A DNA stretch of 64,000 nt from sequence record ON287376.1. One strand, written 5' to 3'. The notes beneath the pieces are model-generated. The model did not search any database. It worked only from the letters and a program-made list of their open reading frames with translations, and had not been told where the DNA came from. Position 1 is the first letter of the stretch. Every line of letters begins with the position of its first letter. The position numbers and the translations under genes were made by a program. Shown piece after piece: positions 1 through 19,721 of the stretch.

Positions 1-26
1 ATTTAGTAATAACTGTAACTAATGGA

Positions 27-542
27 ATGAACAGTTTAACAGATACATTACGAGTAGAGCTGGATAACTTTCCAGTAGCTCGTATCAAGGGATGGGTAAA
101 GATCATCAGTGAACGATATGGATTAGCTACTCTACCTACGCTGTACTACATGGACTGGGGGAAGGTGGTTGATGACATTAACGAACACCCTCATACCGTT
201 CTCAATGTAGGAGGAGACAGCAGTATTACCTGGGAAGCGGGTAATACATGGCCAAAGGGTGTAAACTCTGATGGTACGTTATCGGCTGGACGTACCATTA
301 AGTTCCATCCAACCACATGGTCAGAAATCATGTTTGCTACTCAGGATAACTTTTTAGAAGTAGAAGGTTTCATTCTGGTAGATAAAACGGGTGCTGTATA
401 TGAGTACGGTATCTTAAATGAACGTAATTTCATTAACCTGGGTGGATTTGATTTCCTCTCTAGCGATTACAAAGCGTTTGCCTACCATCGTAGAGAAGGC
501 GTAGTCACCCTGATCGAACGCCATAGTCCACCAACCGCTTAA
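27..542 (+). CDS. Hypothetical protein (171 aa)
   Basis: ORF track; first of three co-oriented, closely spaced ORFs; no recognisable motif. Confidence 0.75.
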   Translation: MNSLTDTLRVELDNFPVARIKGWVKIISERYGLATLPTLYYMDWGKVVDDINEHPHTVLNVGGDSSITWEAGNTWPKGVNSDGTLSAGRTIKFHPTTWSEIMFATQDNFLEVEGFILVDKTGAVYEYGILNERNFINLGGFDFLSSDYKAFAYHRREGVVTLIERHSPPTA

Positions 543-559
543 TTAATTAGGAGCACGAC

Positions 560-850
560 ATGATTGAAGTAACTTGTGATTCAGTAGCAGATAACTTATT
601 CTCTGTAACATTGAGTAAGCCATCTGAGGGCAGGCTTAATTCTAGCTACTCTCGTAAAGTTTCTTTCCGTATCGATACGAAAGTATACTCCATTCGCTTA
701 GCGAGCATCTCTGCCGTTCACCAGGCTGCACGCAACGGCGGTGAAGGGGTGATTACTATCATCACCCAATCGGCGAAGTACACGTTCAACTACCGTAAGG
801 GCGGCCAGGAAGCAATCAATGAGTTCTTGGCTGCATGGGAACAGATCTGA
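560..850 (+). CDS. Small protein, possible bacterial PH-like (bPH) domain
   Basis: AGGAG RBS before ATG; pattern SIRLASISAVHQ...GVITIITQSAKYTF plus C-terminal helix resembles bPH domains (by eye). Confidence 0.7.
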   Translation: MIEVTCDSVADNLFSVTLSKPSEGRLNSSYSRKVSFRIDTKVYSIRLASISAVHQAARNGGEGVITIITQSAKYTFNYRKGGQEAINEFLAAWEQI

Positions 851-1104
851 TGGAATACTCCATTATCAACCCTAATGGGAAACTCCCCGTACTACGCATC
901 AAAGTCAGTGGTGTTTTGAGTCATTACTCGATTATGGGAATTACGGGTATCAGCTACGCCAAAATGGCCATGCCGTTAGGTACTGTACAAGTGACGATTG
1001 ACCGGGAAGGAACAAGTAATATCTTCCAGGTTCCGGCAAAAGATGTCCCATTAGTAGATGAGATCGTTACTCTCTGGGTAAATATCATCAACGGTATCAA
1101 GTAA
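850..1104 (+). CDS. Small protein (84 aa), possible bPH-like paralog of the upstream gene
   Basis: ATG overlaps upstream TGA (TGATG coupling); YSIMGITGISY...GTVQVTIDREGTSNIFQV plus helix pattern. Confidence 0.7.
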   Translation: MEYSIINPNGKLPVLRIKVSGVLSHYSIMGITGISYAKMAMPLGTVQVTIDREGTSNIFQVPAKDVPLVDEIVTLWVNIINGIK

Positions 1105-1119
1105 GTAATTTGTCATAAA

Positions 1120-1145
1120 CCCACCTACCCTAACCGGTAGGTGGG
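1120..1145 (+). terminator. Intergenic hairpin/terminator
   Basis: CCCACCTACC-CTAACC-GGTAGGTGGG, 10-bp perfect stem just after stop codon, preceded by CATA. Confidence 0.7.
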
Positions 1146-1227
1146 AGTTGTATTATCCTAAATCTTTTTCTTTTGTCCTTACGTTAAAATGTACGCATGT
1201 TTGACTTAATGTAGACATTAGGGAATT

Positions 1228-2142
1228 ATGAGGGAGTTTCGGAAAATGGCCGGGACAAAGAAATTAATCATTACACCAACCTTCAAACTAAAAAAGTTAT
1301 TGAAGGATATGGTAGGCTCAGAGCCAGGTTTTAATCTAGTCTGGCAAATGGCCGTAGACTACATGGTGAAATGCATCTTGTCTGGTGCCCGTAAAGAAAC
1401 GCTTCCCGAATTCATGCAGGAAGCATACGGCGAATTAGATGCTTCCACGAGTTATTACTTCGCAGATCTGTTGGGATTCAAATTGGTTGAGTCCTCGTAC
1501 AGAAAAGATTCATTTACATTCTCCTTGGCATTATCTGGGGAATCTAAAAACGTCCCTGATCTTTCTAAGGTTACGAAGATCTCTCGTACACCTTACGATA
1601 ACGGATGGATGAATGGCGTAGTTTGGTTCCGACCTGTACACTGCGCATTTTACTACGTTAAAGCAACCCGTAACCCATTAGCTGACTTTGTACAGGAAAG
1701 TGCATATCTGGTCGGCAAACACCACAAGGTGAATATCTACCAAAAGATATTTGATGCGGGTGATGATAAACGTATTAAAGGGATTTACTTTGAAGTAGCC
1801 GATCGGAAGGAATCCGAAGATGTAGGTAGTCAGATGTCTAACTACGTCAGAAACAATAGAGGGATCTACGAAGAGGGAGAAAGACGTGTCGGGGAATTAT
1901 TACCTGACCGTAAAGATCAACCCAATACCCAACACCAGGGGAATGGGAAGAAGCCTGACTTTGGTATCGGGAGAAATCAGGTATGTGTAAAAGGTAAGGA
2001 ATACCGTAATGTAGTTTCGTACCACAAAGAGACTCGTTTACCGATGCCGCAGATCTACCGTCGATTGAATTCCCGTCATCCTGAATGGATTGATTGGTTC
2101 TTCATCGGCTCTCCTAAAGATACTAGAAGGAAGTCAGTGTGA
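1228..2142 (+). CDS. Degenerate (probably inactive) GIY-YIG endonuclease-like protein with C-terminal NUMOD1-like HTH
   Basis: 46-aa gapless match by eye to the GIY-YIG core of 12732..14078, with catalytic positions substituted; C-terminal VCVKGKEYRNVV...IYRRLNSRHPEWIDWF module; true start may be ATG 1246 (AGGGAG RBS). Confidence 0.6.
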   Translation: MREFRKMAGTKKLIITPTFKLKKLLKDMVGSEPGFNLVWQMAVDYMVKCILSGARKETLPEFMQEAYGELDASTSYYFADLLGFKLVESSYRKDSFTFSLALSGESKNVPDLSKVTKISRTPYDNGWMNGVVWFRPVHCAFYYVKATRNPLADFVQESAYLVGKHHKVNIYQKIFDAGDDKRIKGIYFEVADRKESEDVGSQMSNYVRNNRGIYEEGERRVGELLPDRKDQPNTQHQGNGKKPDFGIGRNQVCVKGKEYRNVVSYHKETRLPMPQIYRRLNSRHPEWIDWFFIGSPKDTRRKSV

Positions 2143-2393
2143 AAGTATTGGAAAGTAAAGAAGGACACGGTGTTTTCCTTATCCAAACGTACAAGTGCGT
2201 TTTCGATGCAATCAAGTGGTTCGCAGACCAACTAGGTTCAGAAGACCTAGATGAAAGCATCTTAGAGAAATCACTGACCGGGATCGCTATAGAGACAGGG
2301 GTAAGCTTGTTTCCTGCGATCTTAGAAGTCATGGAGACGGACAAGGTAATGTCCTACCGAGTCATTAATCTCGATGGTCTTAAACTTAGCTAG
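2139..2393 (+). CDS. Hypothetical protein (84 aa)
   Basis: GTG start overlapping the upstream TGA, AGGAAG upstream; followed by hairpin. Confidence 0.65.
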   Translation: MKVLESKEGHGVFLIQTYKCVFDAIKWFADQLGSEDLDESILEKSLTGIAIETGVSLFPAILEVMETDKVMSYRVINLDGLKLS

Positions 2394-2395
2394 TC

Positions 2396-2430
2396 CATAA
2401 GCCGGCTGGGGAAACCTGGCCGGTCTATGT
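2396..2430 (+). terminator. Hairpin cassette flanked by CATA and CTATGT
   Basis: CATAA-GCCGGCTGGG-GAAA-CCTGGCCGGT-CTATGT. Confidence 0.65.
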
Positions 2431-2461
2431 TGTTTATGTACAATTAAGAGGAAACACCACC

Positions 2462-2620
2462 ATGCCTAGTACCAGTAAGAAACAAGAGCAATTCATGGCC
2501 GCCGCTGCCCACGACAAAGAGTTCGCTGAAGAAGCAGCCATTCCCCAGAAGGTTGCTAAAGAATTCCATAACGCCGATAAGCGTAAGAAGAACAAGAAAG
2601 CGATCTTGGCAAAACGTTGA
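2462..2620 (+). CDS. Small protein (52 aa, MPSTSKKQEQFMAAAAHDKEF...), absent from the ORF track
   Basis: AAGAGGA RBS; my translation MPSTSKKQEQFMAAAAHDKEFAEEAAIPQKVAKEFHNADKRKKNKKAILAKR*; resembles a small hypothetical family I recall from many phages. Confidence 0.8.
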   Translation: MPSTSKKQEQFMAAAAHDKEFAEEAAIPQKVAKEFHNADKRKKNKKAILAKR

Positions 2621-2766
2621 TTTAGATCTTTTTTTACGCAACAAGTTTAAGTATGTAGAAGCTGCATCAAGTAATCATTTAGTTCAATTAACTCCAGGGT
2701 CGATTGTCGGTAACTAAGTGAGATTCAGCTACAAGCGGGGATGGATCCCCACTAAGTATTGGAGAG

Positions 2767-2863
2767 CTTTAAGGGTACGATCTCAATCGTCCGGGTTGTG
2801 GAACAACTTCCGCACACTAGTGCGTTGGTTTAGGGTTCGACTCCCTACCGGAATGCCTTAAAG
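2767..2863 (+). ncRNA. tRNA-like cloverleaf embedded in a longer stem
   Basis: T arm TAGGG-TTCGACT-CCCTA (2831-2847); closing TCCGG/CCGGA; arms GTTGT-GGA-ACAAC and CGCAC-ACTA-GTGCG; outer stem CTTTAAGG/CCTTAAAG. Confidence 0.6.
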
Positions 2864-2934
2864 GTAGCGCATGATAAATGCGAGCAACTAACACGAGGCG
2901 ACATTACGCGCCTACTCCAATCAAAACGAATTAC

Positions 2935-3017
2935 GGGGGAGTTCCAGAGTGGTCAAATGGAGCAGACTGTAAATCTGTTGTCTTCGGACTTCGGTGGTTC
3001 GAATCCGCCCTCCCCCA
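2935..3017 (+). tRNA. trnY: tRNA-Tyr(GTA), canonical class II, CCA not encoded
   Basis: GGGGGAG/CTCCCCC acceptor, GCAGA-CTGTAAA-TCTGT anticodon arm, GTC-TTCG-GAC variable arm, GGTGG-TTCGAAT-CCGCC T arm, A73. Confidence 0.95.
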
Positions 3018-3025
3018 AGAATAAT

Positions 3026-3121
3026 GCGACGATTAGCTCAGTTGGATAGAGCGCGGTTATTGCCCCCTGGGCAAACATCGGAAACCGAGGCCCCGTGTTC
3101 AAATCACGGATCTGTCGCCCA
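3026..3121 (+). tRNA. Atypical tRNA: Arg-like D arm, 24-nt anticodon loop, G-1:C73, bulged acceptor, CCA encoded
   Basis: GCGAC-GAT/ATC-T-GTCGC + CCA; D arm GCTC-AGTTGGATA-GAGC; CGGTT/AACCG stem; T arm CCGTG-TTCAAAT-CACGG. Confidence 0.75.
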
Positions 3122-3127
3122 AACAAT

Positions 3128-3206
3128 GAACCGAGTAGCTCAACTGAATAGAGCACCGTCCTGCTAAGACGGAGGTTAGAGGTTTGAATCCTTTCTCTGG
3201 TTCCCA
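3128..3206 (+). tRNA. Atypical tRNA with GCT (Ser) anticodon on a class I body; G-1:C73, bulged acceptor, CCA encoded
   Basis: GAACC-GAG/CTC-T-GGTTC + CCA; CCGTC-CTGCTAA-GACGG anticodon arm; 5-nt variable loop; T arm AGAGG-TTTGAAT-CCTTT. Confidence 0.8.
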
Positions 3207-3212
3207 AACAAC

Positions 3213-3376
3213 GACACTGATCTCAAGAAGATCGGCAGCCTTACCCAACCGTGTCGCGGCGATCGCCAGCAATCGGTATTTAGTGCACGGTACGTAGACA
3301 AGCCTTTGAGCGAAGTTCCGCGTCCCGAGCCGCCGGCAGCCCATAAGCCTCAGTGAAATTCTGAGGGGTGTCACCA
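3213..3376 (+). ncRNA. 164-nt RNA with tRNA-like acceptor/T domain (6+6 bp) ending ACCA
   Basis: GACACT/GGTGTC + ACCA; CCTCAG-TGAAATT-CTGAGG; GATC-TCAAGAA-GATC 5' hairpin; internal ACCGTG/CACGGT helix. Confidence 0.6.
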
Positions 3377-3381
3377 AAGAT

Positions 3382-3445
3382 GTCCTCATTGCAGAGGGAG
3401 GTTGATTGTAGTCAGCCTGTTGTGAAACTAATCTGCAGTGGGGAC
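3382..3445 (+). ncRNA. Structured RNA element (14-bp closing helix with inner hairpin)
   Basis: GTCCTCATTGCAGA/TCTGCAGTGGGGAC, 14 bp including G-U pairs; inner GGTTGAT-TGTA-GTCAGCC. Confidence 0.5.
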
Positions 3446-3466
3446 GCCTTCCCTTTCTAAAGTTTT

Positions 3467-3552
3467 ATCGAGATAGTCTACTTAAACCTAGTGAGGAATT
3501 CGACGGCGGATACGTCCGTAAGACTGCGTAGGTTCGATCCCTACTCTCGATC
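3467..3552 (+). ncRNA. tRNA-like RNA with 23-nt D loop and 4-nt anticodon loop
   Basis: Perfect ATCGAGA/TCTCGAT acceptor; T8 A9; GTC/GAC D stem; GCGGA-TACG-TCCGT; GTAGG-TTCGATC-CCTAC T arm. Confidence 0.7.
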
Positions 3553-3568
3553 CGATTTAAAAGAACAA

Positions 3569-3696
3569 TGACGCCTGCACGTAAAAAGCAAACTGCGCCA
3601 GCTGGGCGCGGTGGGGGCTAAGTGCCAGCAACTGTTGTGGCGAGATCGCGGCAACAGCACCGGAAAGCCAGGTGCGATTCCTGGGGGCGTCACCCA
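3569..3696 (+). ncRNA. 128-nt tRNA-like RNA (8-bp acceptor + 5-bp T stem), ends C-CCA
   Basis: TGACGCCT/GGGCGTCA + CCCA; CCAGG-TGCGATT-CCTGG; internal hairpins ACTGCGCC/GGCGCGGT and CTGTTG...CAACAG. Confidence 0.65.
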
Positions 3697-3698
3697 AT

Positions 3699-3776
3699 TA
3701 GGTACGTAAGTCTCAAGTGGCCGCATTCATCTGCCCGCTGCCTAAAGACTTTGTGGAATGGATTCCGCGTACCTAA
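3699..3776 (+). ncRNA. tRNA-sized structured RNA with acceptor/T-like stack
   Basis: TAGGTAC/GTACCTA 7 bp abutting GTGGA-ATGGAT-TCCGC; AAGTCT/AGACTT inner helix. Confidence 0.45.
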
Positions 3777-3811
3777 AAACCAGTAAGTTAAACTAATAGG
3801 ACGATTCTACG

Positions 3812-4321
3812 ATGACTATCCTTAATCGCGATATGATCATGCAAGAACTCTTAAACTCAATAGATCCTGATGCAGGCCCATGTCTTGGGCTTAGCAGGGA
3901 AAAAGAGTTAGCCGAAATTTATACGCTAGGATTCAAGGCACCTCGCCAAACGGGGTCTACGTATTGGCTTATCGAAAAACTCATTGAGGATCGTAACTCA
4001 ATTGTAATTTTGATTAATAGCGACTTTAAAGAACACTTCCTAGCGGATGTTGAGAAATACCCTAAAATCATTTTCGACAAGTGTCTTAAATATGGACCAT
4101 CTGTTGAACGGGGTATTCTTAATGGCGACAAAGACAATATAATCGATCGTTGCTTCACTGCCAGGGAATTCTTAAACGCTGACCTAGAACGTCACCGCTA
4201 CGCCACATCGGTCTTCTTTGATGGCGCGTCGACGATTGCTAGTAAGATTAATCTTAATGCGTATTACCGAAAGTTGGCCAAAGAAGTAAAAGGTTATCCG
4301 GTTACTTGGCTGATTAACTAA
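3812..4321 (+). CDS. Degenerate P-loop (terminase-ATPase-like) domain protein
   Basis: AGGA RBS; APRQTGST resembles PRQxGKT Walker A with K>S; SVFFDGA resembles a Walker B lacking Glu. Confidence 0.6.
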   Translation: MTILNRDMIMQELLNSIDPDAGPCLGLSREKELAEIYTLGFKAPRQTGSTYWLIEKLIEDRNSIVILINSDFKEHFLADVEKYPKIIFDKCLKYGPSVERGILNGDKDNIIDRCFTAREFLNADLERHRYATSVFFDGASTIASKINLNAYYRKLAKEVKGYPVTWLIN

Positions 4322-4413
4322 AGAACACTTGATGTGCTGGTAAAGGTTTAGTCACCTTTTTTAAGATCGTCCGCTAATGATTGATACTAGCGCATCTTTT
4401 TTATTGAAGAATC

Positions 4414-4638
4414 CCGCCGATCGGGTAGCGTACGTCTGGCGTAGTCATTACTCTAATTGAGTGGGGCTACGAGGGGTTTACCAGTCGATCGGTGGTACCA
4501 AACTCTGAGCAGGTTGCAGCCGGCTGGAGTAAATAGGGGACTGCGAGTCCCCAGGTGCATAAAGGCCCAGAAATGGCGCCCGGCACAAGACGCAGCGCGT
4601 CGGTATCGAGAGGGGCTTCGGCCCCTCTCTTTATTTTC
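4414..4638 (+). ncRNA. Candidate orphan structured RNA ending in an intrinsic terminator
   Basis: CCGCCGATCG/CGATCGGTGG 10-bp helix enclosing the GTAGTC/GGCTAC hairpin; GGGGACT-GCG-AGTCCCC; GACGC-AGC-GCGTC; no RBS-supported ORF. Confidence 0.5.
4608..4637 (+). terminator. Rho-independent terminator
   Basis: GAGAGGGGC-TTCG-GCCCCTCTC followed by TTTATTTT. Confidence 0.85.
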
Positions 4639-4655
4639 TTCAACGGGAAACTGTT

Positions 4656-5132
4656 ATGAAATTCATACTGGCATTGAATCCTAAAGATCCGGCAATTAAA
4701 GGTTACGAATCAGATCTTCTTAAGATGATCCAGATTATGGATAAACGAGAAGCTACTTACTGGAAAGAGTCAGCTAACTTAGATATCCTTAGTCGTGAGA
4801 TGGAGTGTAAAACCTTAGAGGAACGTTGGGTAGACGATACTCAAATACTAATGCTCCTTGTGAGGGGTAATCCTGTAGGTTTCGTTGAGTACACGACCGC
4901 AGTAGTTAACGCTAGTTCTAAGTGGCTTTCTATATGTTATCTGTACGTACAACGAGAGTACAGAGGGTTTGGATATGGATCTGCACTAGTTGATCAAGTA
5001 AGGAACTTTGCCAAGATCCAACAAGTAGATCAATTGTCACTTTCAGTCAAGTCAAGAAATAAACGAGCCATTAAGTTTTACAAGAGATACGGTTTCTCGG
5101 AACAGACTAAGTACTTCTGTATGAAACCTTAA
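4656..5132 (+). CDS. GNAT family acetyltransferase
   Basis: LYVQREYRGFGYGSAL acetyl-CoA motif A; SVKSRNKRAIKFYKRYGF motif B. Confidence 0.9.
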   Translation: MKFILALNPKDPAIKGYESDLLKMIQIMDKREATYWKESANLDILSREMECKTLEERWVDDTQILMLLVRGNPVGFVEYTTAVVNASSKWLSICYLYVQREYRGFGYGSALVDQVRNFAKIQQVDQLSLSVKSRNKRAIKFYKRYGFSEQTKYFCMKP

Positions 5133-5146
5133 TTAGGAGAGTAACG

Positions 5147-5347
5147 ATGATTATCTTCCCTGGGATTACTGCGGTAGAGAAAAGTCAACTGAGCGTCGGT
5201 ACGCTCATTAATTATACCGGGCTAGGACTCAAGTTTAAATGTGATGTCTGCGAAGAGAAGTTAACCGTAAGCTATTACAAAGACAGTAAACCCGAAGATC
5301 GGATTATCTGTTCAAAGTGCAGCGGTTCTTCTTTCAGCACCTACTAA
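5147..5347 (+). CDS. Small zinc-ribbon protein
   Basis: AGGAG RBS; CDVC...CSKC double CxxC. Confidence 0.75.
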   Translation: MIIFPGITAVEKSQLSVGTLINYTGLGLKFKCDVCEEKLTVSYYKDSKPEDRIICSKCSGSSFSTY

Positions 5348-5350
5348 GCA

Positions 5351-5390
5351 AACATAGGGAGAGGGAAAACCCTCTCCCTCTATAATGTTT
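5351..5390. terminator. Bidirectional terminator between convergent genes
   Basis: AACATA-GGGAGAGGG-AAAA-CCCTCTCCC-TCTATAATGTT. Confidence 0.8.
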
Positions 5391-7314
5391 AAACGCCGTC
5401 AGGAATATTGAGCATGGAGTTAACCTGATCCGTAGACCACTCGAGAATATCGAATGTACGGGAGTTAATGTTCTCCTGGTCACCGGTATCTAAGACGAAC
5501 TCAAATACGAACGTAGGAGCGTCCTGATCAATCCTGTCAATACGACCTATCGCTTGTTCCATGTTGTAGCTACGGAACGGCACGTTCAATGCCAGGATGG
5601 TATTTGCCATTGTCATCGGTACGGCACTGGAAAGAGATTGGAATGTAGTAACCATCGCCCGCTCTTTACCCGTTTCGAACTTCTTGACTTCACTATCAGC
5701 AGTACCTTCAGAACTACCGTGAACTACCAGTGGTTGAATGCCTTTACCTTTAAGATATTTGGCACACTCATCAACTACCTTAACGTACGAAGTAAAGACG
5801 ACAGTTTTCTTCTCAGCCTCCTCGATATACTTCTCGATTTTAGCATGACGCATAACTGCCTCAACTGCTTCCTCACGCCGTTTGGATACAAGTGACCCAA
5901 GACACTCCCCTCTGACTTTCAATTCAACATACTTGATTACAGAGAGATAGGATCGCAGTTTCTTCCTACGTTCATTATCCAAAGCAGGTAAAAGAACATT
6001 CTTCTCGTACTTATTAACAAATACGATAGTGTCCCGGATTTTAGGATAATCAGTAGTCTTAACTATCACGTTGAACATCTTACGATAAAGCGCGAACTGT
6101 TGCTTCTGCTGAGGACTCTTCAACGCCTTCTCAAAGATGGCAAGGGACTCGTTGTAATACTTCAGAGCATTACCTCGCTGACCTTCCCAGTACTTCAAAC
6201 GATCCTTGATAAACTTCTCCATATCTTTCTTGAGAGTAGTCAACAAGAAAGGAGTTGGGTCGGGTATCTTAACAGGGACACGTTCGATCTTAGGTTCGGT
6301 TTTAACAACCTCAGCTTTGAAGACGATATTACCCAGACGATGACTAATGATGTCGAATACCTTATTACTGGACTTACCGTATAACTTACGGAAAGCCTCT
6401 GCAACATCATCGTTCATGAGCGGATCGATTGTCCTTAGCATGGTGATCGCTTCAGTACCGTATGCCTTAAGCGGGGTTGCCGATGCCCAAATAGTCGACA
6501 TGGGTTCGATGATCTTCCATGCTTCGTACATGATGTTATTTCGACCACTTGTCTCTTCGTTCAACGTGTGGGATTCATCGAGTATTAGCGTGACTTTCTT
6601 ACCACGGAACTTACTCGCAATCTCTTTGAAATAACGTAGGTCTTCTACGTGGAAGATCAGGAAAGGAGGGGGATTTCCTTTTAACTCTTTGTCCCGATCG
6701 TAGATCCAGTACTTAGGAGGATTACGAAAATCTTCCTTCATCGACTTTTCCCAAACACGATAGACCGCACGTTTGAGCGTTATGATAATCGTGAAGTCTG
6801 ACCCTAACATCTGGGACAGAGCCAGAGACGAATAGGTCTTACCTGTACCAGTTTTCATAGCCAGCGTATAGCCATGAAGACGGAATCTCGGCACTACGTT
6901 ATCGTATTTATCAAAGAACTCAACCTGGTGTTCCTTAGGCGTGAATTTGAACAACGATAACTTAGAACGATTAAGGATTGGATCGTGTTCTTCTTGAGTA
7001 CTCTTCAGCCAGGTGTTTTCTAACATGGCGTTTTTAACGGACACCAGAGATCGTTTGGAGGTCTTGTTTAACTTAGGGAACTCCAATAACTTGTCGACAA
7101 TGTAAACGAACTCTACTGCGAAGAAACTATAAAACTCAATCTCGTAGGGAGAGACTTTAATGAACATCGATTTGACGATCCTGTTTGTCCGCCACAGAGA
7201 ATAGATGTCCGCAAACATGTTCTTGGTTTTCAAAGCCGAAACAGTAATCTTCCCATTACTCTCCACGACCTTAACCGAACCAATTAAAGAACGAATTGGG
7301 TTAAGAATGCCCAT
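5389..7314 (-). CDS. Superfamily 2 (DEXH) helicase
   Basis: AMKTGTGKT Walker A; LILDESH motif II; ASATP motif III; EQAIGRIDRIDQ motif VI. Confidence 0.9.
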   Translation of the reverse strand: MGILNPIRSLIGSVKVVESNGKITVSALKTKNMFADIYSLWRTNRIVKSMFIKVSPYEIEFYSFFAVEFVYIVDKLLEFPKLNKTSKRSLVSVKNAMLENTWLKSTQEEHDPILNRSKLSLFKFTPKEHQVEFFDKYDNVVPRFRLHGYTLAMKTGTGKTYSSLALSQMLGSDFTIIITLKRAVYRVWEKSMKEDFRNPPKYWIYDRDKELKGNPPPFLIFHVEDLRYFKEIASKFRGKKVTLILDESHTLNEETSGRNNIMYEAWKIIEPMSTIWASATPLKAYGTEAITMLRTIDPLMNDDVAEAFRKLYGKSSNKVFDIISHRLGNIVFKAEVVKTEPKIERVPVKIPDPTPFLLTTLKKDMEKFIKDRLKYWEGQRGNALKYYNESLAIFEKALKSPQQKQQFALYRKMFNVIVKTTDYPKIRDTIVFVNKYEKNVLLPALDNERRKKLRSYLSVIKYVELKVRGECLGSLVSKRREEAVEAVMRHAKIEKYIEEAEKKTVVFTSYVKVVDECAKYLKGKGIQPLVVHGSSEGTADSEVKKFETGKERAMVTTFQSLSSAVPMTMANTILALNVPFRSYNMEQAIGRIDRIDQDAPTFVFEFVLDTGDQENINSRTFDILEWSTDQVNSMLNIPDGV

Positions 7315-7368
7315 TACAGTTTACCCGATAGTTGATTAGCCTAGACATAGAAAATCTCGAAAAGTATT

Positions 7369-7382
7369 CACGTATATATTAC
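7369..7382 (+). promoter_or_regulatory. phiKZ-type early promoter motif
   Basis: CACGTATATATTAC, identical at 12638-12651; TATATTAC core matches the phiKZ early consensus as I recall it. Confidence 0.65.
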
Positions 7383-7416
7383 AACCATGATAGAGGCCAT
7401 TAGTAGGTAATGTCAG

Positions 7417-8085
7417 ATGGGCAATCTAATAGTTAAGTTCGATTACCCAGCGGGTATACGGGCTAAGATAAAAGAATGGGTTAAGAATAATCCGTTCTTC
7501 GAAGCATTGATCTTTTCGATGGTAATCGAATCTAAGATCGATACCATGTTCGCTTGTCCTGAAATAGAAGGGCTCGCTGATAAGTTTAAAGGGAACTACG
7601 AATCCCTAGAGGATCATCTTGACGGTAAAGAATTCAGCCATGCTAAACCGACTGAATTAGGATTGGACGTAATAGCTAACAAGGATAAAGATAAACTCCT
7701 TGACTATTCTCCGATGAGGTCGATAAACGATATCCGTTTCTTCAAAGACCAAGAAGAGATGAAGAAGTGGTTTAAAGGCCCAGGTAAACACTTCTCCAGA
7801 TTTATCCTGATTTGTTCAACTGTGGTATTAAAGGAATATGGAGTAGTAAACTCCAATCAAGGAAACGACCTGGAAGAGTGTTTAAAGATCAACGGCAAGA
7901 TGTTCGATTACATCACAGCCAAGAAAGCACAGTGGGCAGTATTGAACTTTAACGTGAATGGAAATGAGGGAGCGATCAATAATTCGTCTAGAGTTATCGA
8001 ACGTTTAATCACCTTAACCATGAACGCTAAGAGAAAAGCACGCGGCAGAGACGCCGGTAAATTAATCGCACCAATCGAAAACTAA
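7417..8085 (+). CDS. Hypothetical protein (222 aa)
   Basis: ORF track; directly downstream of the early promoter motif. Confidence 0.75.
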   Translation: MGNLIVKFDYPAGIRAKIKEWVKNNPFFEALIFSMVIESKIDTMFACPEIEGLADKFKGNYESLEDHLDGKEFSHAKPTELGLDVIANKDKDKLLDYSPMRSINDIRFFKDQEEMKKWFKGPGKHFSRFILICSTVVLKEYGVVNSNQGNDLEECLKINGKMFDYITAKKAQWAVLNFNVNGNEGAINNSSRVIERLITLTMNAKRKARGRDAGKLIAPIEN

Positions 8086-8095
8086 GGAAATACAA

Positions 8096-8503
8096 ATGAA
8101 AAACATCACCAAAACTATCGCAGCTATCGCATTCGCAACCGGCGCTATGTTCGCAGCCAATAACGCATATGCCGCAGACGGCTACAAATCTCCAGATGTG
8201 AAATACGCCAAACCATGCGTAGCCGACGCTCGCCAGAAGGCGCAGCTTATGGCTAACACCTACCAGGAAATGAACCAGCTGGATTACGAAGCTGAACTGA
8301 AACTGGTCGACCCTACCTTCCCGGCGGCATTCCGCAATCCGGTACGCAAAGAGCAGTTCGTTCACCCGATCGAATTCAAAGTGCTGTTCGTCCGTGGTTT
8401 CGAAACACGTATCCGCGTGATGTACTCCAACTCCTCAGCCACTGATCCTAACATGTGTGTATTCCAGGGCATCGAATTCCTCGACCTGACCGACGCAAAC
8501 TAA
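8096..8503 (+). CDS. Predicted secreted/periplasmic protein
   Basis: AAGGA RBS; Sec signal peptide MKNITK-hydrophobic-AYA|A; two Cys in the mature part. Confidence 0.8.
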   Translation: MKNITKTIAAIAFATGAMFAANNAYAADGYKSPDVKYAKPCVADARQKAQLMANTYQEMNQLDYEAELKLVDPTFPAAFRNPVRKEQFVHPIEFKVLFVRGFETRIRVMYSNSSATDPNMCVFQGIEFLDLTDAN

Positions 8504-8530
8504 TTCTACCAATCCGAAATAGCGGTCTTA

Positions 8531-9073
8531 ATGGCCGCTAATAAATTTAAGGAGCTTAACGTGACTAAACGATTTATTCTGCTGAAGGACATTTTTGGAG
8601 AAAACTGGAAACGAGGTGGCGTAGTAGACTTAGCCGAAGTGGTCATGATTGCACCGGCTAATATCGCGGTACCGCGTACACTCGATGATATCCGCATCAT
8701 CACTCGTGGCGGTGCAGAAACTCGCATCATCGTTGAAGATTTAAATCAGTCCTCTATCGTAGCCGCTAACGATAAGTTGGTACAGGCCTTCATGGATTAC
8801 GTTACCGCTCAAGCAGAGGGGCCGGAACTTCCCCCGGAACAAATTAAACCAACACGGGAAGAAAAGCTGGCTCGGTTCAATGAAATGGTCATTGCTGAAA
8901 TTTCAAAGTTAACTGACTATGGTCGGTTAAGCGCATTTCACCTGAGCATTACTGAAACAACGGAGTGGAATCAAAAAGATCTCAACGATCTTGATTCCTT
9001 CCTTAAGTATCGTCCGGGTGCGTGGACTAACCAATATCGTAAAATCATGGAGTGCGAAGATGATCTTTGGTAA
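8531..9073 (+). CDS. Hypothetical protein (180 aa)
   Basis: ORF track; co-oriented operon. Confidence 0.75.
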   Translation: MAANKFKELNVTKRFILLKDIFGENWKRGGVVDLAEVVMIAPANIAVPRTLDDIRIITRGGAETRIIVEDLNQSSIVAANDKLVQAFMDYVTAQAEGPELPPEQIKPTREEKLARFNEMVIAEISKLTDYGRLSAFHLSITETTEWNQKDLNDLDSFLKYRPGAWTNQYRKIMECEDDLW

Positions 9074-9362
9074 CTACAAATCAGCCACGATCCAACGTTC
9101 AGACGTACCTGATCTGAAATCACTGTACATCATGGTACTGCTCAACTCTCACGCTGTCGACCATCTGGCTGAATACGCTATGGTGCGCGATGAGACAACC
9201 GTCGGCGTATTCGCTGTTAAACCAACTGGCGAGACTGTAGAAGACTCGCTCACCATTATTCGTTTAACCGGCGGGGCTGTTAAGTTCATCCTTTCCGAAT
9301 CCATGATTGAGTTTACCGTCGATCAATCCTTCCTCAAACGTTTTATCTCAGGAATTCAATAA
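9060..9362 (+). CDS. Hypothetical protein (~100 aa; start moved to ATG 9060)
   Basis: GGAG 7 nt before ATG 9060; overlaps the end of the upstream gene. Confidence 0.65.
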   Translation: MIFGNYKSATIQRSDVPDLKSLYIMVLLNSHAVDHLAEYAMVRDETTVGVFAVKPTGETVEDSLTIIRLTGGAVKFILSESMIEFTVDQSFLKRFISGIQ

Positions 9363-9838
9363 TGGCCAGAAAAGTAGAAGTTACTTCCCTTACCGATGAT
9401 GCCGGTGAACTAGCCTTAACGCTGACCTACGAAGGCCACTCGGAAACTGCGCGCTTTACCACCGAAGAGTTGAAACCTCTCGATGGATTAAAGTACGCGC
9501 TCTGCCTTTTATTTGCAGACGATTGGAAAGAAGAAGGTTTCATTCGCCGGATGCATATTACTGAGCTAGTAATCAAGTACGATATTACTATCTCTAAAGA
9601 AGCGGAGCTTGCGGCGATCCAGTTGAACAATGGTTTCAAAGAACTCTTCCGTGAATTCCCAGGCTCCGTCGGCAGCAAAGAAGACCGCGTTGACGCACTG
9701 ATCCAGGCTATGGTGGCGGACATCAACACTCGCGCCCTGCACAATCATCAACATGGCGATCCTTGGACTCTGGAAGACTGTAAGAAAGGTGCCGACCTGG
9801 GCCGCAAAGTAGCATTTCAGTTGAAAGAACTATTGTAA
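9362..9838 (+). CDS. Hypothetical protein (158 aa)
   Basis: TAATG translational coupling; followed by terminator. Confidence 0.75.
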   Translation: MARKVEVTSLTDDAGELALTLTYEGHSETARFTTEELKPLDGLKYALCLLFADDWKEEGFIRRMHITELVIKYDITISKEAELAAIQLNNGFKELFREFPGSVGSKEDRVDALIQAMVADINTRALHNHQHGDPWTLEDCKKGADLGRKVAFQLKELL

Positions 9839-9845
9839 CATAATC

Positions 9846-9871
9846 GCAGAGTACCCTTCGGGGTACTCTGC
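9846..9871 (+). terminator. Terminator hairpin (24-bp core duplicated at 14087-14110)
   Basis: GCAGAGTACCC-TTCG-GGGTACTCTGC. Confidence 0.8.
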
Positions 9872-9909
9872 TTCATCTAAAGTAACTATTTCTTTTTTTG
9901 GAGAATTCA

Positions 9910-10554
9910 ATGAAAACTAAAGTCGAACGTATAAAGGCTGTGTGCGATAAACTGAATCCCGAAAAAGAATACTTCTTTACTGGGATCGGTTCAACCGAAG
10001 TAACCGAAGACGAGTTCTCTTTAATGAAAATGCTCGCCTCAGTAATCTCAGTTACTTTCAGAATCGGAGTTCGTTCAGGCCGTGCTCCTGGATCAGACCA
10101 AGCCTTCCAAGCTGGCGTGGAGTATTCCAACCATAAATGTAGTTTGAACAATCTCCCCTTAGCGCCATTGGAGATTTATTTACCCTGGAAAAAGTTTGAG
10201 CTTGATAACCCGAATACCTCTAAGGATAATTCAATTTGGGAAATGGATCACTACGACAAAGCCTCAGAGATCTGCTCAACTATTCACCCTATCTTCGACA
10301 GACTCACGGATGCCCAACGTAAGTTCCATGTACGTAACGTTTATCAGACCTTAGGTAAAGACCTAAACTCTCCGTCCCTCTTTGTGCTCTATTGTGCAGA
10401 TGAGGATAAACACGGATTACCTAAGGGAGGAACTCGCACGGCTACTAAGTTAGCAGTAGATAGAAACATTCCTGTTTTGAACATCCGTGGTAAAACGCTA
10501 ACGTTTATAATGGACTGGGTTCTAGAGATACTGGAGAGTCGGTTGTTATGTTAA
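9910..10554 (+). CDS. SLOG superfamily (DprA/Smf-like) protein
   Basis: FTGIGS; VRSGRAPGSDQAF; EIYLPW; HVRNVYQTLG; KGGTRTATKLAVDRNIPVLN motifs typical of phage SLOG proteins. Confidence 0.8.
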   Translation: MKTKVERIKAVCDKLNPEKEYFFTGIGSTEVTEDEFSLMKMLASVISVTFRIGVRSGRAPGSDQAFQAGVEYSNHKCSLNNLPLAPLEIYLPWKKFELDNPNTSKDNSIWEMDHYDKASEICSTIHPIFDRLTDAQRKFHVRNVYQTLGKDLNSPSLFVLYCADEDKHGLPKGGTRTATKLAVDRNIPVLNIRGKTLTFIMDWVLEILESRLLC

Positions 10555-10585
10555 TTCGACAACCATGTGAAAAGGAATAACCAAA

Positions 10586-11455
10586 ATGTTAAGATCAAAA
10601 ATCTTAGCGCGCTCCGCAGTCAGCAACGAAAGTTTCCTCGACTCCTTGAGAGCCAAAAAAGAACCAGAAACTAAAACGTTGCTGACGATCCCAGAGAAGA
10701 CGATCGAAGCTACCGGGTATCTGGAAAAACACAAGAACGATGTCGAGAATAAACTCGGCTCCGCTGAGTGGGTAGCTGAGCATTCCGATATCTCAACGAT
10801 CAATCCGCTTTGGAGCCTGGTTCTCCTTAATGGGGAACTCCCAGAGAACATCGGTAAAGCGCTGACTGATAACTTCAAAGAAGCCATCGACTACGCCAAA
10901 GAAGGCGCGAAGGTACTCGAAGCTCGCAGTAAAGAGATCCGTGGCATCGAGAAGAAACTGGACGAAGACTACCAGGCCGATAAAATCGAGAACGCTTCTG
11001 CCGCTATCCAAAGCGCCTACTCGGACATCAAATGTCCACTGGAAGGCCTTAAGTTCGACAAGCCGATGCTCGGCGGTTTCGAAGTAGAGATGGACGGCGC
11101 CAAACGCAAGTACAAATTCCATGACGGTAAAGTCGCCCTGGAAGAACTACCTGCTGCCCAAGATATCGCCAAAGCGGTTAAAGTCGCTTTCGGTATCGTA
11201 GAAGAAGGTATGAAGTTCCTGAACGAATGGGACGACTACAAACTCTTCGACGTTCCCGGTATCGATACTTCCGAAGGTATCTGGCGCGACCAATCCGTCA
11301 AGCACAACAACAAAAAGACCCGCGAGATCTCCGACTTCATCGATAGTGAGGGTCATGTAGAAGTCGCTGAGCTGTTCTACGTATCTCCTCTGCGTGCTGC
11401 GATTGATTCTGCGGTGGCCTTTATCCGCATGGTCAACGAATCGAGCAAGAAGTAA
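10586..11455 (+). CDS. Putative internal head protein with prohead-protease site
   Basis: AAGGA RBS; N-terminal VSNE|S motif; C-terminal helix like the paralogs at 33-40 kb. Confidence 0.6.
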   Translation: MLRSKILARSAVSNESFLDSLRAKKEPETKTLLTIPEKTIEATGYLEKHKNDVENKLGSAEWVAEHSDISTINPLWSLVLLNGELPENIGKALTDNFKEAIDYAKEGAKVLEARSKEIRGIEKKLDEDYQADKIENASAAIQSAYSDIKCPLEGLKFDKPMLGGFEVEMDGAKRKYKFHDGKVALEELPAAQDIAKAVKVAFGIVEEGMKFLNEWDDYKLFDVPGIDTSEGIWRDQSVKHNNKKTREISDFIDSEGHVEVAELFYVSPLRAAIDSAVAFIRMVNESSKK

Positions 11456-11482
11456 CGCCAACCTAATGAAGAGTCGGACGAA

Positions 11483-12619
11483 ATGAAATACACTCGCGAA
11501 ATACTAAAGAATAAAACGCAGGGAGTTAACAACCCCTCCCAGCCAACTATGGAATCCTTCTCTCAATTCCTGGACAACCACATTACTTTAGAAGCAGCCT
11601 CTTCGGTCGCCAATGAGAGTAATGCGCTGATGGCGGGCATCCTTATTGACTCCATGGGATTAGGCGAATCTATCTCACTGGAATCTGAAAATGTAAACTA
11701 CGACGTTTCCCTGGAAGCTGCCAAAGAACAAAACCATGCCAATATGCAGAAGAAGGCATCTGAGTTCAACAGTGGCTTCATGGGTTGGTTGAGTAAAAAG
11801 TTCAGTGCCCGTGGCAAGCTGTTCAGCGAACTCGATGAACTCATCGAATATCTGGAAGGTAAAGAGGGCGAAATCTCCATCGATGGTAATGCCTTCAAAA
11901 TAGACTTCGGTGGCGGTAACGTAAAACAACTCATGGAAGATTTTGCCAAGGCCTACAAAACCCTTGCAGAACTACACATGACTCGCTGCTCTAAGTCAGT
12001 AGAAATGCTTAAGGGCGGTAGTAACCTGGCTGACGCCTATAAAGGCATCCTGGCCCCTTTCGTATCTGGCATGTCTCGTGTCGTTTCAGTAAAGACTGGT
12101 CAGCGCATGGGCGAAAGAGAAGTTCTGGGTGAAAAGGCTTTGTTTGTATATGCTAACAAAGGCCGTGTCGGTACCACTAACTTCATGGGTATCTACATTC
12201 CTGTTGATATCAACGATATCCGTAACAGAGCAGGTGAAGGCCTGAGTAACATCCGGGACGTAGCTCATTTCTACACCAAAATCTCCGAGAACACTTACGT
12301 CACGTTTGACGACTTCATGTCCCCAGCTCCGTTCGAATCGCCTAAGACGTTCCAGGAACTACTGGAAATCGTCAAAGCTTATCGTGCGGTTATGGACGAC
12401 GTAATGGATAACGGTCGTAGTAAAGCCCTGCAACGTTTGGTAGATGAAGAAAACAAAATCATCAAAAGCCAGAGGAAACCAGAAGCTGAGAAATTCGCCA
12501 GCTGGCAGATGTCAGCGAGTAACTTCTCTACGGCTAAGTTGTTCTTCGAGTCGTGCGAAACAGCCATGGTTAAAAAGTTCAAATCCCTGAAGCTAATGGC
12601 CAAGGCCGCAAGTAAATAA
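11483..12619 (+). CDS. Putative internal head protein, multiple S/T-x-E cleavage sites
   Basis: TMES, TLEA, SLES, SLEA clustered in the first ~80 aa. Confidence 0.65.
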   Translation: MKYTREILKNKTQGVNNPSQPTMESFSQFLDNHITLEAASSVANESNALMAGILIDSMGLGESISLESENVNYDVSLEAAKEQNHANMQKKASEFNSGFMGWLSKKFSARGKLFSELDELIEYLEGKEGEISIDGNAFKIDFGGGNVKQLMEDFAKAYKTLAELHMTRCSKSVEMLKGGSNLADAYKGILAPFVSGMSRVVSVKTGQRMGEREVLGEKALFVYANKGRVGTTNFMGIYIPVDINDIRNRAGEGLSNIRDVAHFYTKISENTYVTFDDFMSPAPFESPKTFQELLEIVKAYRAVMDDVMDNGRSKALQRLVDEENKIIKSQRKPEAEKFASWQMSASNFSTAKLFFESCETAMVKKFKSLKLMAKAASK

Positions 12620-12637
12620 GTAAAATGAATCTTCCGT

Positions 12638-12651
12638 CACGTATATATTAC
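12638..12651 (+). promoter_or_regulatory. phiKZ-type early promoter motif upstream of the GIY-YIG gene
   Basis: CACGTATATATTAC, exact copy of 7369-7382. Confidence 0.65.
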
Positions 12652-12731
12652 TCTAATGTAGGGGATTAGCTACCCCCTATTAAAAAATCTTAACCTTGGC
12701 TTTCTTAGCCTCCTTTGCAAAGGATTTTTAA

Positions 12732-14078: not shown

Positions 14079-14111
14079 AACATAGCCAGAGTACCCTTCG
14101 GGGTACTCTGG
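14079..14111. terminator. Bidirectional terminator between convergent genes
   Basis: AACATAG-CCAGAGTACCC-TTCG-GGGTACTCTGG. Confidence 0.8.
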
Positions 14112-14152
14112 ACTACTCTTCACGGTTACTTATTTTTTTTGGCTAGACGGGC

Positions 14153-16376: not shown

Positions 16377-16410
16377 GTGATGACCCTCAACGTTATTGAA
16401 TAAATATTTA

Positions 16411-16425
16411 CATAGGTACCGTATG
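16411..16425. promoter_or_regulatory. Back-to-back TATG late-promoter motifs in a divergent spacer
   Basis: CATA-GGTACC-G-TATG quasi-palindrome between divergent genes. Confidence 0.5.
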
Positions 16426-16468
16426 AGATGTAGTCTTTTATATCAAAATTCTGATAAAGGAAAATAAG

Positions 16469-16882
16469 ATGCCAGTAAGCCGAAAACCTCGTAAGAAAAC
16501 GAAGGCGGTGAAAGCTACATCTCGCCCCGAAGTAACCAGGGAAAAAGTCCTGGAACAAATCGAAGTAATCCGCCAGAAGCTGATTGAAATTTATCAACTT
16601 CTCGCTTATTACACCAAGCTGAAAGAAGCCGGGACCGTACCGGAAGACCAGCTGGAGTTATTCTCCGAAAAGATTCATACGATTGGCCAAGAGTTCAACA
16701 CTTATGCGACCAGTCTGGCTAAGTTTAAGAAAGAAGTGGAAGCTTTGGAAATAGGCTCAGACTGCGACCACTTGCGCGAAGTACTTAGTGAGTACCTTGT
16801 CAGGATGTCAGCTTTCCTGGTGCCAATGGCAGAGTGTACTGATATTATCCTTAAAGTAGAAGGAAAGAAAGATGTCAACTGA
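16469..16882 (+). CDS. Hypothetical coiled-coil protein (137 aa)
   Basis: AAGGA RBS; basic N-terminus MPVSRKPRKKTK; helical heptads. Confidence 0.75.
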   Translation: MPVSRKPRKKTKAVKATSRPEVTREKVLEQIEVIRQKLIEIYQLLAYYTKLKEAGTVPEDQLELFSEKIHTIGQEFNTYATSLAKFKKEVEALEIGSDCDHLREVLSEYLVRMSAFLVPMAECTDIILKVEGKKDVN

Positions 16883-18617: not shown

Positions 18618-18658
18618 TCGAAACCTACCACGGCCTAGGGAGTCTTCAGAGTAAGATA

Positions 18659-18988: not shown

Positions 18989-19052
18989 CGATAATGCCGC
19001 TTGGAAACAGGCGGCTAATCCTATGTAATAAACATACCTCAAGGAATTTGCC

Positions 19053-19715: not shown

Positions 19716-19721
19716 TAACGT

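Follow-up and report, generated by a model that had tools for sequence, protein, structure and literature searches.

A bulged 8-bp acceptor helix with G−1:C73 on two tRNA-Arg-like genes of Serratia phage vB_SmaM-Kodama

The G−1:C73 base pair is the major identity element that histidyl-tRNA synthetase (HisRS) reads on its transfer RNA (tRNA) (PMC4357726, PMC3064791). Here we describe two adjacent phage genes, designated tRNA1 and tRNA2, that carry this pair on bodies of another kind. The genes lie in bases 1-64000 of ON287376.1, a 64-kb stretch that was analysed as a whole and is called the window below; the record is that of Serratia phage vB_SmaM-Kodama, a jumbo phage of the genus Moabitevirus with a 275-kb genome. 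As in bacterial tRNA-His, the G at −1 of tRNA1 and of tRNA2 pairs with C73, the CCA that follows is encoded, and the base of the leader before the G is U. They differ from tRNA-His in that the anticodons are a disrupted UCG (tRNA1) and GCU (tRNA2) and not GUG, the body is of the Arg type, and the acceptor helix is interrupted by a bulge. The anticodon of tRNA2 is GCU in all eight of the sequenced Moabitevirus genomes, and where tRNA-His has a continuous 8-base-pair (bp) acceptor, a bulge is present in both Kodama genes and in seven of the eight tRNA2 orthologues.

The acidobacterial G−1 tRNAs of Mukai et al. (2017) are similar to tRNA1 and tRNA2 in that they combine G−1 with a non-His anticodon and are clustered with irregular tRNA-like RNAs (PMC5389517). 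Those tRNAs are charged by HisRS and are unused in translation, which is the behaviour that we propose for tRNA1 and tRNA2, although the likeness is in design only. The acidobacterial tRNAs come from another kind of organism and have another body, some of them with an 8/4 layout; no bulge in the acceptor has been reported for them, and they are associated with toxin-antitoxin loci rather than with a lytic jumbo phage. An 8-bp acceptor is also found in selenocysteine tRNA (tRNA-Sec) and the allo-tRNAs, whose acceptor/T-stem layouts are 8/5, 8/4 and 9/3, and the acceptor-T branch of tRNA1 and tRNA2 comprises 13 bp, as in bacterial tRNA-Sec. Some 8/4 species have a single bulged base, but it is at position 51a in the T stem, whereas the bulge of tRNA1 and tRNA2 is in the 3′ strand of the acceptor. 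tRNA1 and tRNA2 lack the unpaired discriminator, the long variable arm and the 6-bp D stem of tRNA-Sec and the allo-tRNAs. Their D stem has 4 bp and their variable loop 5 nucleotides (nt), and mismatches arise when a Sec-type 8-bp register is imposed.

The likeness to tRNA-Arg(UCU) and tRNA-Arg(UCG) is in the body. tRNA2 has an exact 26-nt match to tRNA-Arg together with A20, C35 and U36, and tRNA1 reads as tRNA-Arg(tcg) when an insertion is skipped. tRNA2 departs from tRNA-Arg in having G34 instead of U34, C73 instead of A73 or G73, the extra G−1 pair and the bulge, whereas tRNA1 departs from it in a 17-nt hairpin in the anticodon loop, in C73 and in the bulged 8-bp helix. Described anti-defence phage tRNAs include the T5 tRNA-Tyr, which acts against Retron-Eco7 PtuAB, the T5 tRNA-Lys, which acts against PARIS, and anticodon-loop variants (PMC11555353, PMC11464382, PMC10264068). 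Like them, tRNA1 and tRNA2 are accessory and belong to a cluster associated with homing endonucleases, in this case with a tRNA-Tyr as neighbour and with a variable position 33. The known cases, however, are decoders that replace cleaved host tRNAs, whereas decoding by tRNA1 and tRNA2 looks compromised and it is the acceptor that is distinctive. The two genes combine a tRNA-His end, a tRNA-Arg body and the irregular G−1 design of the Mukai type, and this combination is so far confined to one phage genus. In the literature that we searched, no description was found of a conserved bulge in the 3′ strand of the acceptor together with G−1:C73 on a phage tRNA-Arg body.

Acceptor ends and bodies of tRNA1 and tRNA2

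The bulged 8-bp acceptor structure is genuine in both genes. In tRNA1, the 5′ strand GCGACGAT (3026-3033) pairs with the 3′ strand ATC[T]GTCGC (3110-3118), leaving the T at 3113 bulged, and CCA is encoded at 3119-3121. In tRNA2, the 5′ strand GAACCGAG (3128-3135) pairs with CTC[T]GGTTC (3195-3203), leaving the T at 3198 bulged, and CCA is encoded at 3204-3206. Pairs −1, 4, 5 and 6 are identical in the two acceptors, while at pairs 1, 2, 3 and 7 both bases are different and pairing is still Watson-Crick. The bulged base is in the 3′ strand, five pairs below the end of the helix, and C73 is paired, leaving no free discriminator. A first-pass annotation, made from the letters of the window, had described these acceptors pair by pair, and its account was exact. 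The minimum free energy (MFE) structure given by RNAfold for each gene agrees with it, having the bulged 8-bp acceptor on a cloverleaf. The features of the two genes and of their immediate surroundings are as follows.

3026..3121, + strand: tRNA1, tRNA-Arg(UCG)-like, with bulged 8-bp acceptor and encoded CCA (MFE fold, ARAGORN intron mode)
3062..3078, + strand: 17-nt insertion in the anticodon loop of tRNA1 (ARAGORN placement)
3113, + strand: bulged U of tRNA1, between pairs 5:68 and 4:69 (sequence, fold, alignment)
3128..3206, + strand: tRNA2, tRNA-Arg(UCU) body with G34, called "tRNA-Ser" in GenBank (ARAGORN, Rfam, fold, orthologues)
3162, + strand: position 33 of tRNA2, U in Kodama (orthologue comparison)
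3163-3165, + strand: anticodon GCU of tRNA2 (ARAGORN)
3198, + strand: bulged U of tRNA2, A in Moabite and Yaphecito (sequence, orthologues, alignment)
3020..3025, + strand: leader AATAAT directly 5′ of tRNA1, ending in A(−2)U(−1) before the G that pairs with C73 (sequence)
3122..3127, + strand: AACAAT, spacer and leader from the CCA of tRNA1 to G−1 of tRNA2 (sequence)
2935..3017, + strand: canonical tRNA-Tyr(GUA), adjacent on the upstream side within the cluster (ARAGORN, Rfam, GenBank)

When the five tRNA2 haplotypes and tRNA1 were aligned, the bulged 8-bp register paired 95.8% of the cells and the canonical 7-bp register of Rfam paired 64.3%. All of the unpaired cells in the bulged register come from the recombinant tRNA2 copy of phage Totoro, and the pair at −1:73 is G:C in each of the six sequences. 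The bulge can alternatively be drawn as the neighbouring C if G·U pairs are allowed, but its placement is unambiguous in Moabite and Yaphecito, in which the bulged base is A. The core of the L shape is complete in both genes (U8, A14, G18, A21, the 19:56 pair, T54, U55 and A58), and the Levitt pair 15:48 is G15:C48 in tRNA1 and A15:U48 in tRNA2.

The closest BLAST matches of the tRNA2 D arm are phage tRNA-Arg genes. A 26-nt pattern that runs from the D arm through the 5′ side of the anticodon stem, written with one R code, was searched in metagenome contigs in a single scan and matched exactly in bacterial tRNA-Arg(TCT) genes only; the remainder of the anticodon stem, compared by eye, agrees. 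In the matched genes, which contain ...CCGTCCTTCTAAGACGG..., the acceptor has 7 bp, position 73 is A and CCA is present. The D loops of tRNA1 and tRNA2, AACUGAAUA and AGUUGGAUA, respectively, are of the Arg type with A20, and tRNA2 keeps C35 and U36. Because the pattern of the D arm and anticodon stem matches only tRNA-Arg(TCT), we take tRNA2 to be a tRNA-Arg(UCU) body in which G34 makes the anticodon GCU. The RF00005 model of Rfam gives tRNA2 47.5 bits (threshold 29), with two acceptor mismatches in its 7-bp register. In the phage tRNA-Arg genes used for comparison, the acceptor is an ordinary 7-bp helix; the odd acceptor is specific to tRNA1 and tRNA2.

The variable loop of tRNA2 is AGGUU, which is only 5 nt, and the "tRNA-Ser" label is therefore untenable. 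A long variable arm is the main determinant for seryl-tRNA synthetase in type II tRNAs and is absent from tRNA2; the tRNA-Ser(GCU) genes of Erwinia phages ChrisDB and pEa_SNUABM_4 are 90 nt in length and do have it. The "tRNA-Ser" annotation is wrong in all Moabitevirus records, and tRNA1 is unannotated. Two other origins of tRNA2 were considered and rejected: the tRNA-Ser(GCU) of relatives, given that the D arm is of type I and not type II, and a phage tRNA-His, to which the identity is 61% over 82 nt (E = 0.1).

ARAGORN, with introns allowed, reports tRNA1 as tRNA-Arg(tcg) with a 17-nt "intron", and the best BLAST matches of its D arm are again phage tRNA-Arg genes, so that it reads as a tRNA-Arg(UCG)-like derivative. 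RF00005 did not match tRNA1 even at E <= 10. In the predicted fold, the anticodon loop contains the hairpin UUGCCC-CCU-GGGCAA at 3060-3074, and the anticodon is UCG only when the 17 nt are skipped. We know of no means by which bacteria or phages could remove such an insertion from an anticodon loop, and the tRNA1 transcript therefore cannot show a normal anticodon. No second copy of the hairpin motif was found anywhere in the window, and a repeated genomic element was rejected on this scope. Judged from their sequences, both genes are tRNA-Arg derivatives and not a new class of RNA. The "new tRNA-like class" proposed in the first-pass annotation was an overstatement in view of the D arms, the 26-nt pattern and the ARAGORN result with introns allowed.

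Orthologues and selection on tRNA shape

tRNA2 is present in all eight genomes (Kodama, Haymo, Totoro, 2050HW, BUCT660, ParM-25, Moabite and Yaphecito), which hold five tRNA2 haplotypes. The expectation that homologues of a real structure should keep the bulge was borne out in seven of them, with the bulged base itself switching from U to A. The state of the main elements is listed below.

8-bp acceptor, G−1:C73 and CCA of tRNA2: kept in seven genomes
Bulged base of tRNA2: U in five of the seven and A in the other two (Moabite and Yaphecito), with no change in the flanking pairs
T stem of tRNA2: two pairs altered on both sides, 49:65 from A-U to G-C and 53:61 from G-C to A-U
Tertiary pair 19:56: A:U in the group of Kodama, Haymo and 2050HW, A·C in Moabite and Yaphecito, G:C in Totoro

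The tRNA2 haplotypes are separated by a minimum of 13 substitutions, nine of which are at unpaired positions while the other four make up two compensated pairs, and all 22 pairs are intact. Random sets of 13 substitutions preserved the 22 pairs in only 0.05% of 200,000 trials. These results show that tRNA2 is under selection for tRNA shape. Within the T loop, T54, U55, R57 and A58 are conserved while the variable positions vary. Position 33 is U almost universally in elongator tRNAs; in tRNA2 it is U in Kodama, whereas four relatives have C and one has A. The eight genomes show no variation in the GCU anticodon or at positions 32, 37 and 38, although the overall divergence is too low for this to weigh much. 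Every tRNA2 orthologue is preceded by a leader that ends in CAAT before the G.

Processing, charging and a proposed function

The sequence AAYAATG occurs three times in 3020-3570, each time at the 5′ edge of an RNA element (tRNA1, tRNA2 and an element at 3569). At its cleavage site, bacterial RNase P has a preference for A(−2)U(−1), and the acceptor stem is lengthened by leader bases that pair with the 3′ end; an AAU leader before G is the optimal context for retention of that G in the mature RNA (PMC10731613). Erwinia phage ChrisDB has a genuine tRNA-His in which AAU likewise precedes G−1. Given the leader, the preference of RNase P and the context of the ChrisDB tRNA-His, it is a reasonable inference that G−1 is kept on mature tRNA1 and tRNA2.

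The identity elements of E. coli arginyl-tRNA synthetase (ArgRS) are A20, C35 and U36, and because the tRNA2 body keeps all three, ArgRS is an alternative charging enzyme. For HisRS, irregular G−1 tRNAs with the Thr anticodon GGU were charged by the E. coli enzyme better than tRNA-His itself, and no His was inserted in vivo (PMC5389517). As to what a GCU anticodon would read, the residues that stand opposite the AGY codons of Kodama in homologues from ChrisDB are Ser, Ala and Gly and not Arg or His (35 AGY codons from five protein pairs), and AGY usage is ordinary (15.5 per 1000 codons). In the genes of Kodama and ChrisDB that were sampled, only 0-2% of Arg codons are AGA or AGG, and 68% are CGT. 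Reassignment of AGY to Arg or His was rejected, on this small sample of 35 codons, because the alignments are Ser-like. The AGY alignments and usage and the near absence of AGR thus give no sign of recoding and no need of a tRNA-Arg(UCU).

Our tentative interpretation, to which we assign a probability of roughly 0.4, is that tRNA1 and tRNA2 are accessory mimics of tRNA whose structure is under selection; they would probably be histidylated and would interact with a host factor and not with the ribosome. The cluster would be transcribed as one precursor, from which host RNase P would cut 5′ of the G after the AAU leader, as it does with bacterial pre-tRNA-His, and the product of this step would be a bulged 8-bp helix with no free discriminator. 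With the major HisRS identity set at the acceptor end, the RNAs would probably be histidylated whatever the anticodon. They are expected to be poor decoders or non-decoders, tRNA1 owing to its loop hairpin and tRNA2 owing to its variable position 33 and to a Ser anticodon on an Arg body. The two genes have the acceptor, T and D half in common and differ in the anticodon region; since this half is shared and the anticodons are disabled (tRNA1) or odd (tRNA2), we place the function at the acceptor end. The mimics would there engage a host protein that reads this end, and candidates are HisRS, an end-modifying toxin and an anti-phage nuclease. The cluster would be mobile, shuffled by recombination associated with homing endonucleases, and its genes would be conditionally useful and dispensable.

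A GNAT acetyltransferase gene is located at 4656-5132 (+ strand), about 900 nt downstream of the RNA cluster. Its matches are generic only (RimI-like, polyamine or aminoglycoside acetyltransferases), with none to a named tRNA-acetylating toxin family, and it was not retained as a candidate aminoacyl-tRNA acetyltransferase toxin.

The RNA cluster and the rival explanations

The region of ~2650-3750 has no gene annotated in the Kodama record and contains, on the + strand, tRNAs plus tRNA-like structured RNAs; the GenBank labels within the cluster are tRNA-Tyr (2935-3017) and "tRNA-Ser" (3128-3206) only. One short hypothetical open reading frame (ORF) is the sole annotated coding sequence (CDS) of this region in Moabite. 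ARAGORN with default settings and Rfam made the same two calls as GenBank, tRNA-Tyr and tRNA2, and missed tRNA1. No sigma-70 promoters were found in the cluster, as expected because the phage has its own RNA polymerases. The tRNA-Tyr of Kodama is without an encoded CCA (...CTCCCCC-A-AGAAT); tRNA1 and tRNA2 encode it. Moabite and 2050HW have a different tRNA-Tyr allele, with CCA encoded. The defences Retron-Eco7 PtuAB and Septu act on tRNA-Tyr, and in T5 and T6 infection is rescued by the tRNA-Tyr of the phage (PMC11555353, PMC13096335), which may be a reason that tRNA-Tyr is the sole canonical tRNA retained in the Kodama cluster.

Four further structured elements are present on the + strand. 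The first, an RNA of ~165 nt at 2761-2925, is conserved in Erwinia Machinavirus/Seoulvirus phages with ~74% identity (L013:2107-2273, L012:2214-2380, L014:2318-2481), and RNAalifold predicts 49 pairs, 13 of which covary. Embedded in it at 2788-2855 is a tRNA-like three-arm domain (Rfam mascRNA-like, E = 0.0025; T loop GGUUCGACUCC), and it has an invariant single-stranded GAGCAACUAACACGAGGCG; no Rfam family matched it as a whole. An 11-nt deletion in the Moabite homologue removes part of the T arm. The second, of ~166 nt at 3213-3378, is closed by GACAC(U)/GGUGUC beside a T-arm-like hairpin, CCUCAG-UGAAAUU-CUGAGG, followed by A-CCA, and is replaced by unrelated sequence in Moabite and Yaphecito. 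The T4 tRNA cluster has stable non-tRNA RNAs, which this and other elements of the cluster recall. The third, at 3467-3549, was called by no tool that we used. It is a tRNA-like element with a 7-bp acceptor, ATCGAGA/TCTCGAT, and a T arm, GTAGG-TTCGATC-CCTAC, with no normal D or anticodon arms, and ~70 nt of it are 90% identical to sequence of the distant Shewanella phage SXP01. The fourth, of 134 nt at 3569-3702, folds with very high stability (-60 kcal/mol, z = -2.5). Its closing 8-bp stem, TGACGCCT/GGGCGTCA, is beside a T-arm-like hairpin, CCAGG-TGCGATT-CCTGG, and is followed by C-CCA; this further 8-bp acceptor with C73 and an AACAAT leader is conserved in Haymo, Moabite and Totoro.

At the syntenic site, Erwinia Machinavirus phages have 10-11 normal tRNAs, including a normal tRNA-His and a long-arm tRNA-Ser(GCU). 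Erwinia phages also carry an unannotated tRNA-like gene (L013:2792-2880, L012:2806-2895) with a CAU anticodon loop and a long variable arm. Two drawings of its acceptor are possible, one of 7 bp that includes two G·U pairs and one of 8 bp in which a U is bulged, and the acceptor is followed by GCC/CCC and not CCA. Irregular tRNA-like genes therefore occur in the clusters of relatives too.

The cluster itself varies from phage to phage. In 2050HW, BUCT660, ParM-25, Moabite and Yaphecito, tRNA-Tyr is followed directly by tRNA2, and tRNA1 is absent from six of the eight genomes, with a clean absence in Haymo. In Totoro (826-1516), tRNA-Tyr is truncated after the D arm and an HNH endonuclease gene takes the place of its 3′ half. 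The HNH ORF ends in the spacer and is followed by AATAATGCGACGA, the leader and 5′ strand of tRNA1, joined there to a tRNA2 body with its 3′ strand. This chimera shows that tRNA1 was once present in a second lineage. Between Kodama and ParM-25 the cluster (2600-3650) is 95.0% identical and the surrounding 20 kb (1-20000) 99.0% identical; with Moabite the values are 89.4% for the cluster and 97.2% for the flanks, and with Totoro 96.7% and 80.5%, the neighbouring 169-amino-acid protein being 42% identical. At the level of sequence, these values imply that the cluster is mosaic, a recombination hot spot that was recently exchanged between co-circulating phages. Kodama and Totoro have the same host strain and the same type of source (sewage, Germany). 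Relatives of the Totoro HNH are often beside or overlapping tRNA-Arg genes in other phages; as a route to the donor of tRNA1, the one case inspected (Bas91) was unrelated to tRNA1. Homing endonucleases in phage tRNA clusters, such as SegB of T4 and T6, are known to bring about preferential inheritance and even tRNA gene amplification (PMC2330249, PMC13096335).

In a custom scan for a T arm and CCA together with an acceptor of 7 or 8 bp, in which one bulge was allowed but not required, the bulged G−1:C73 design was found in tRNA1 and tRNA2 only. The design was not found in the syntenic clusters of Erwinia Machinavirus/Seoulvirus phages, Salmonella phage SA002, pEa_SNUABM_37 and AH06. Searches of IMG/VR with exact and degenerate patterns of the 5′ and 3′ portions of tRNA1 and tRNA2 returned only 2050HW itself plus chance or normal tRNA-Arg matches, and the matches in one metagenome scan were all to normal tRNA-Arg(TCT) genes of bacteria.

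Several of these observations weigh against the proposal that tRNA1 and tRNA2 are selected tRNA mimics. A full copy of tRNA1 is found only in Kodama, with its 5′ remnant in Totoro, and the acceptor of the recombinant Totoro tRNA2 is broken by two mismatches and one G·U pair. The phage thus tolerates the loss of a proper tRNA2 acceptor and, with tRNA1 missing from six of the eight genomes, the function is dispensable. Genes in the cluster do decay, as is evident from the tRNA-Tyr of Haymo (835-914), whose anticodon arm has lost 8 nt (TAAATCTG) and which carries the wrong annotation tRNA-Asn(gtt). No homologue with such an acceptor was found outside Moabitevirus, in the Erwinia and Salmonella relatives, IMG/VR or the metagenomes, and we identified no partner protein or target defence system, the nearby GNAT being generic. 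Finally, the odd acceptor common to tRNA1 and tRNA2 may come from shared descent of paralogues and not from independent selection. The first-pass argument for selection on the structure is therefore upheld by the shape-preserving substitutions among tRNA2 orthologues, but not by the likeness of the two acceptors, which paralogue descent may explain.

The main rival explanation, a serious one though in our estimate unlikely, is that both genes are decaying relics, that is, tRNA-Arg pseudogenes of a larger cluster that is eroding. The bulge would then be a tolerated 1-nt insertion, G34 and the hairpin would be disabling lesions, and G−1:C73 would be a by-product of the AAU-G leader. The many canonical tRNAs in the syntenic Erwinia clusters, with tRNA-His and long-arm tRNA-Ser(GCU) among them, are consistent with this explanation, as are the deletion in the Haymo tRNA-Tyr, the truncated tRNA-Tyr and broken tRNA2 acceptor of Totoro, and the 11 nt missing from the neighbouring tRNA-like element of Moabite. 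It would also account for the lack of conservation of U33 in tRNA2, for the presence of an unneeded tRNA-Arg(UCU) where AGR codons are almost unused, and for the absence of tRNA1 from most relatives. Decay, however, does not fit with the four stems of tRNA2, which are intact in seven of the eight genomes with compensatory changes at 49:65 and 53:61 and with covarying tertiary pairs, nor with a fold that random sets of substitutions keep in only 0.05% of trials. It also leaves unexplained why T54, U55, R57 and A58 are kept while the variable T-loop positions vary, and why G34 and G−1:C73 are fixed in eight of eight genomes.

A further reading, which we regard as doubtful, is that the genes represent a hybrid-identity family (Arg body, His-type end, bulge, and Ser or disabled anticodon) that RNase P would process with G−1 in place and HisRS would charge. 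Its members would serve as a decoy or sink for a host factor that recognises acceptor ends, such as an anti-phage tRNA nuclease or an end-modifying toxin, or else as deliberate AGY miscoders, with counter-defence or host takeover exerted through the acceptor and not through the anticodon loop.

One could also envision that tRNA2 is a decoder with a switched identity, charged by ArgRS or HisRS and reading the Ser codons AGY, which would result in mistranslation or partial recoding. The complete cloverleaf and tertiary core of tRNA2, its score of 47.5 bits with RF00005, the invariance of its GCU anticodon and of positions 32, 37 and 38 in the eight genomes, and the presence of the ArgRS elements A20, C35 and U36 would all be in keeping with decoding, and natural mistranslating tRNAs are known (PMC5389517, PMC7609411). 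We think that this is improbable, however, given that AGY codons have a normal frequency and align with Ser-like residues (35 codons), that position 33 of tRNA2 can be U, C or A, that the G−1 tRNAs of Mukai et al. are charged but unused in translation, and that tRNA1, with the same acceptor design, cannot decode.

It is slightly more improbable that the two genes are processing punctuation, serving as entry sites for RNase P and RNase Z that free the neighbouring structured RNAs, in the manner of mascRNA/MALAT1 and mitochondrial tRNAs. The 2650-3750 region is packed with structured RNAs that end in acceptor/T-arm-like modules and has nearly no annotated CDS, and the mascRNA-like match at 2788-2855 (E = 0.0025) and the recurrent AAYAAT leader before G would suit such a role, but punctuation has no requirement for G−1:C73, the bulge, an encoded CCA or a preserved elbow, and relatives without tRNA1 retain the same neighbouring RNAs. 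Least probable of all is an explanation at the level of DNA, in which the bulge, position 33 and the acceptor variants would be target or immunity alleles of a homing endonuclease with incidental effects on the RNA: although the HNH gene in the Totoro cluster, the relatives of this HNH beside or overlapping tRNA-Arg genes, the divergence and recombination at the cluster and the T4 SegB precedent (PMC2330249, PMC13096335) speak for it, it has no known cleavage site and leaves the compensatory stem changes and covarying tertiary pairs unexplained.

The known cases of counter-defence by phage tRNAs all replace a cleaved decoder, whereas the conserved, selected feature of the Moabitevirus genes is an altered acceptor end. 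If tRNA1 and tRNA2 are processed and charged as predicted, they would represent a natural case of phage-encoded tRNA identity switching without decoding, and would direct attention to a host target that recognises tRNA ends. They would also offer a natural setting in which to examine what RNase P, HisRS and EF-Tu do with a bulged 8-bp helix.

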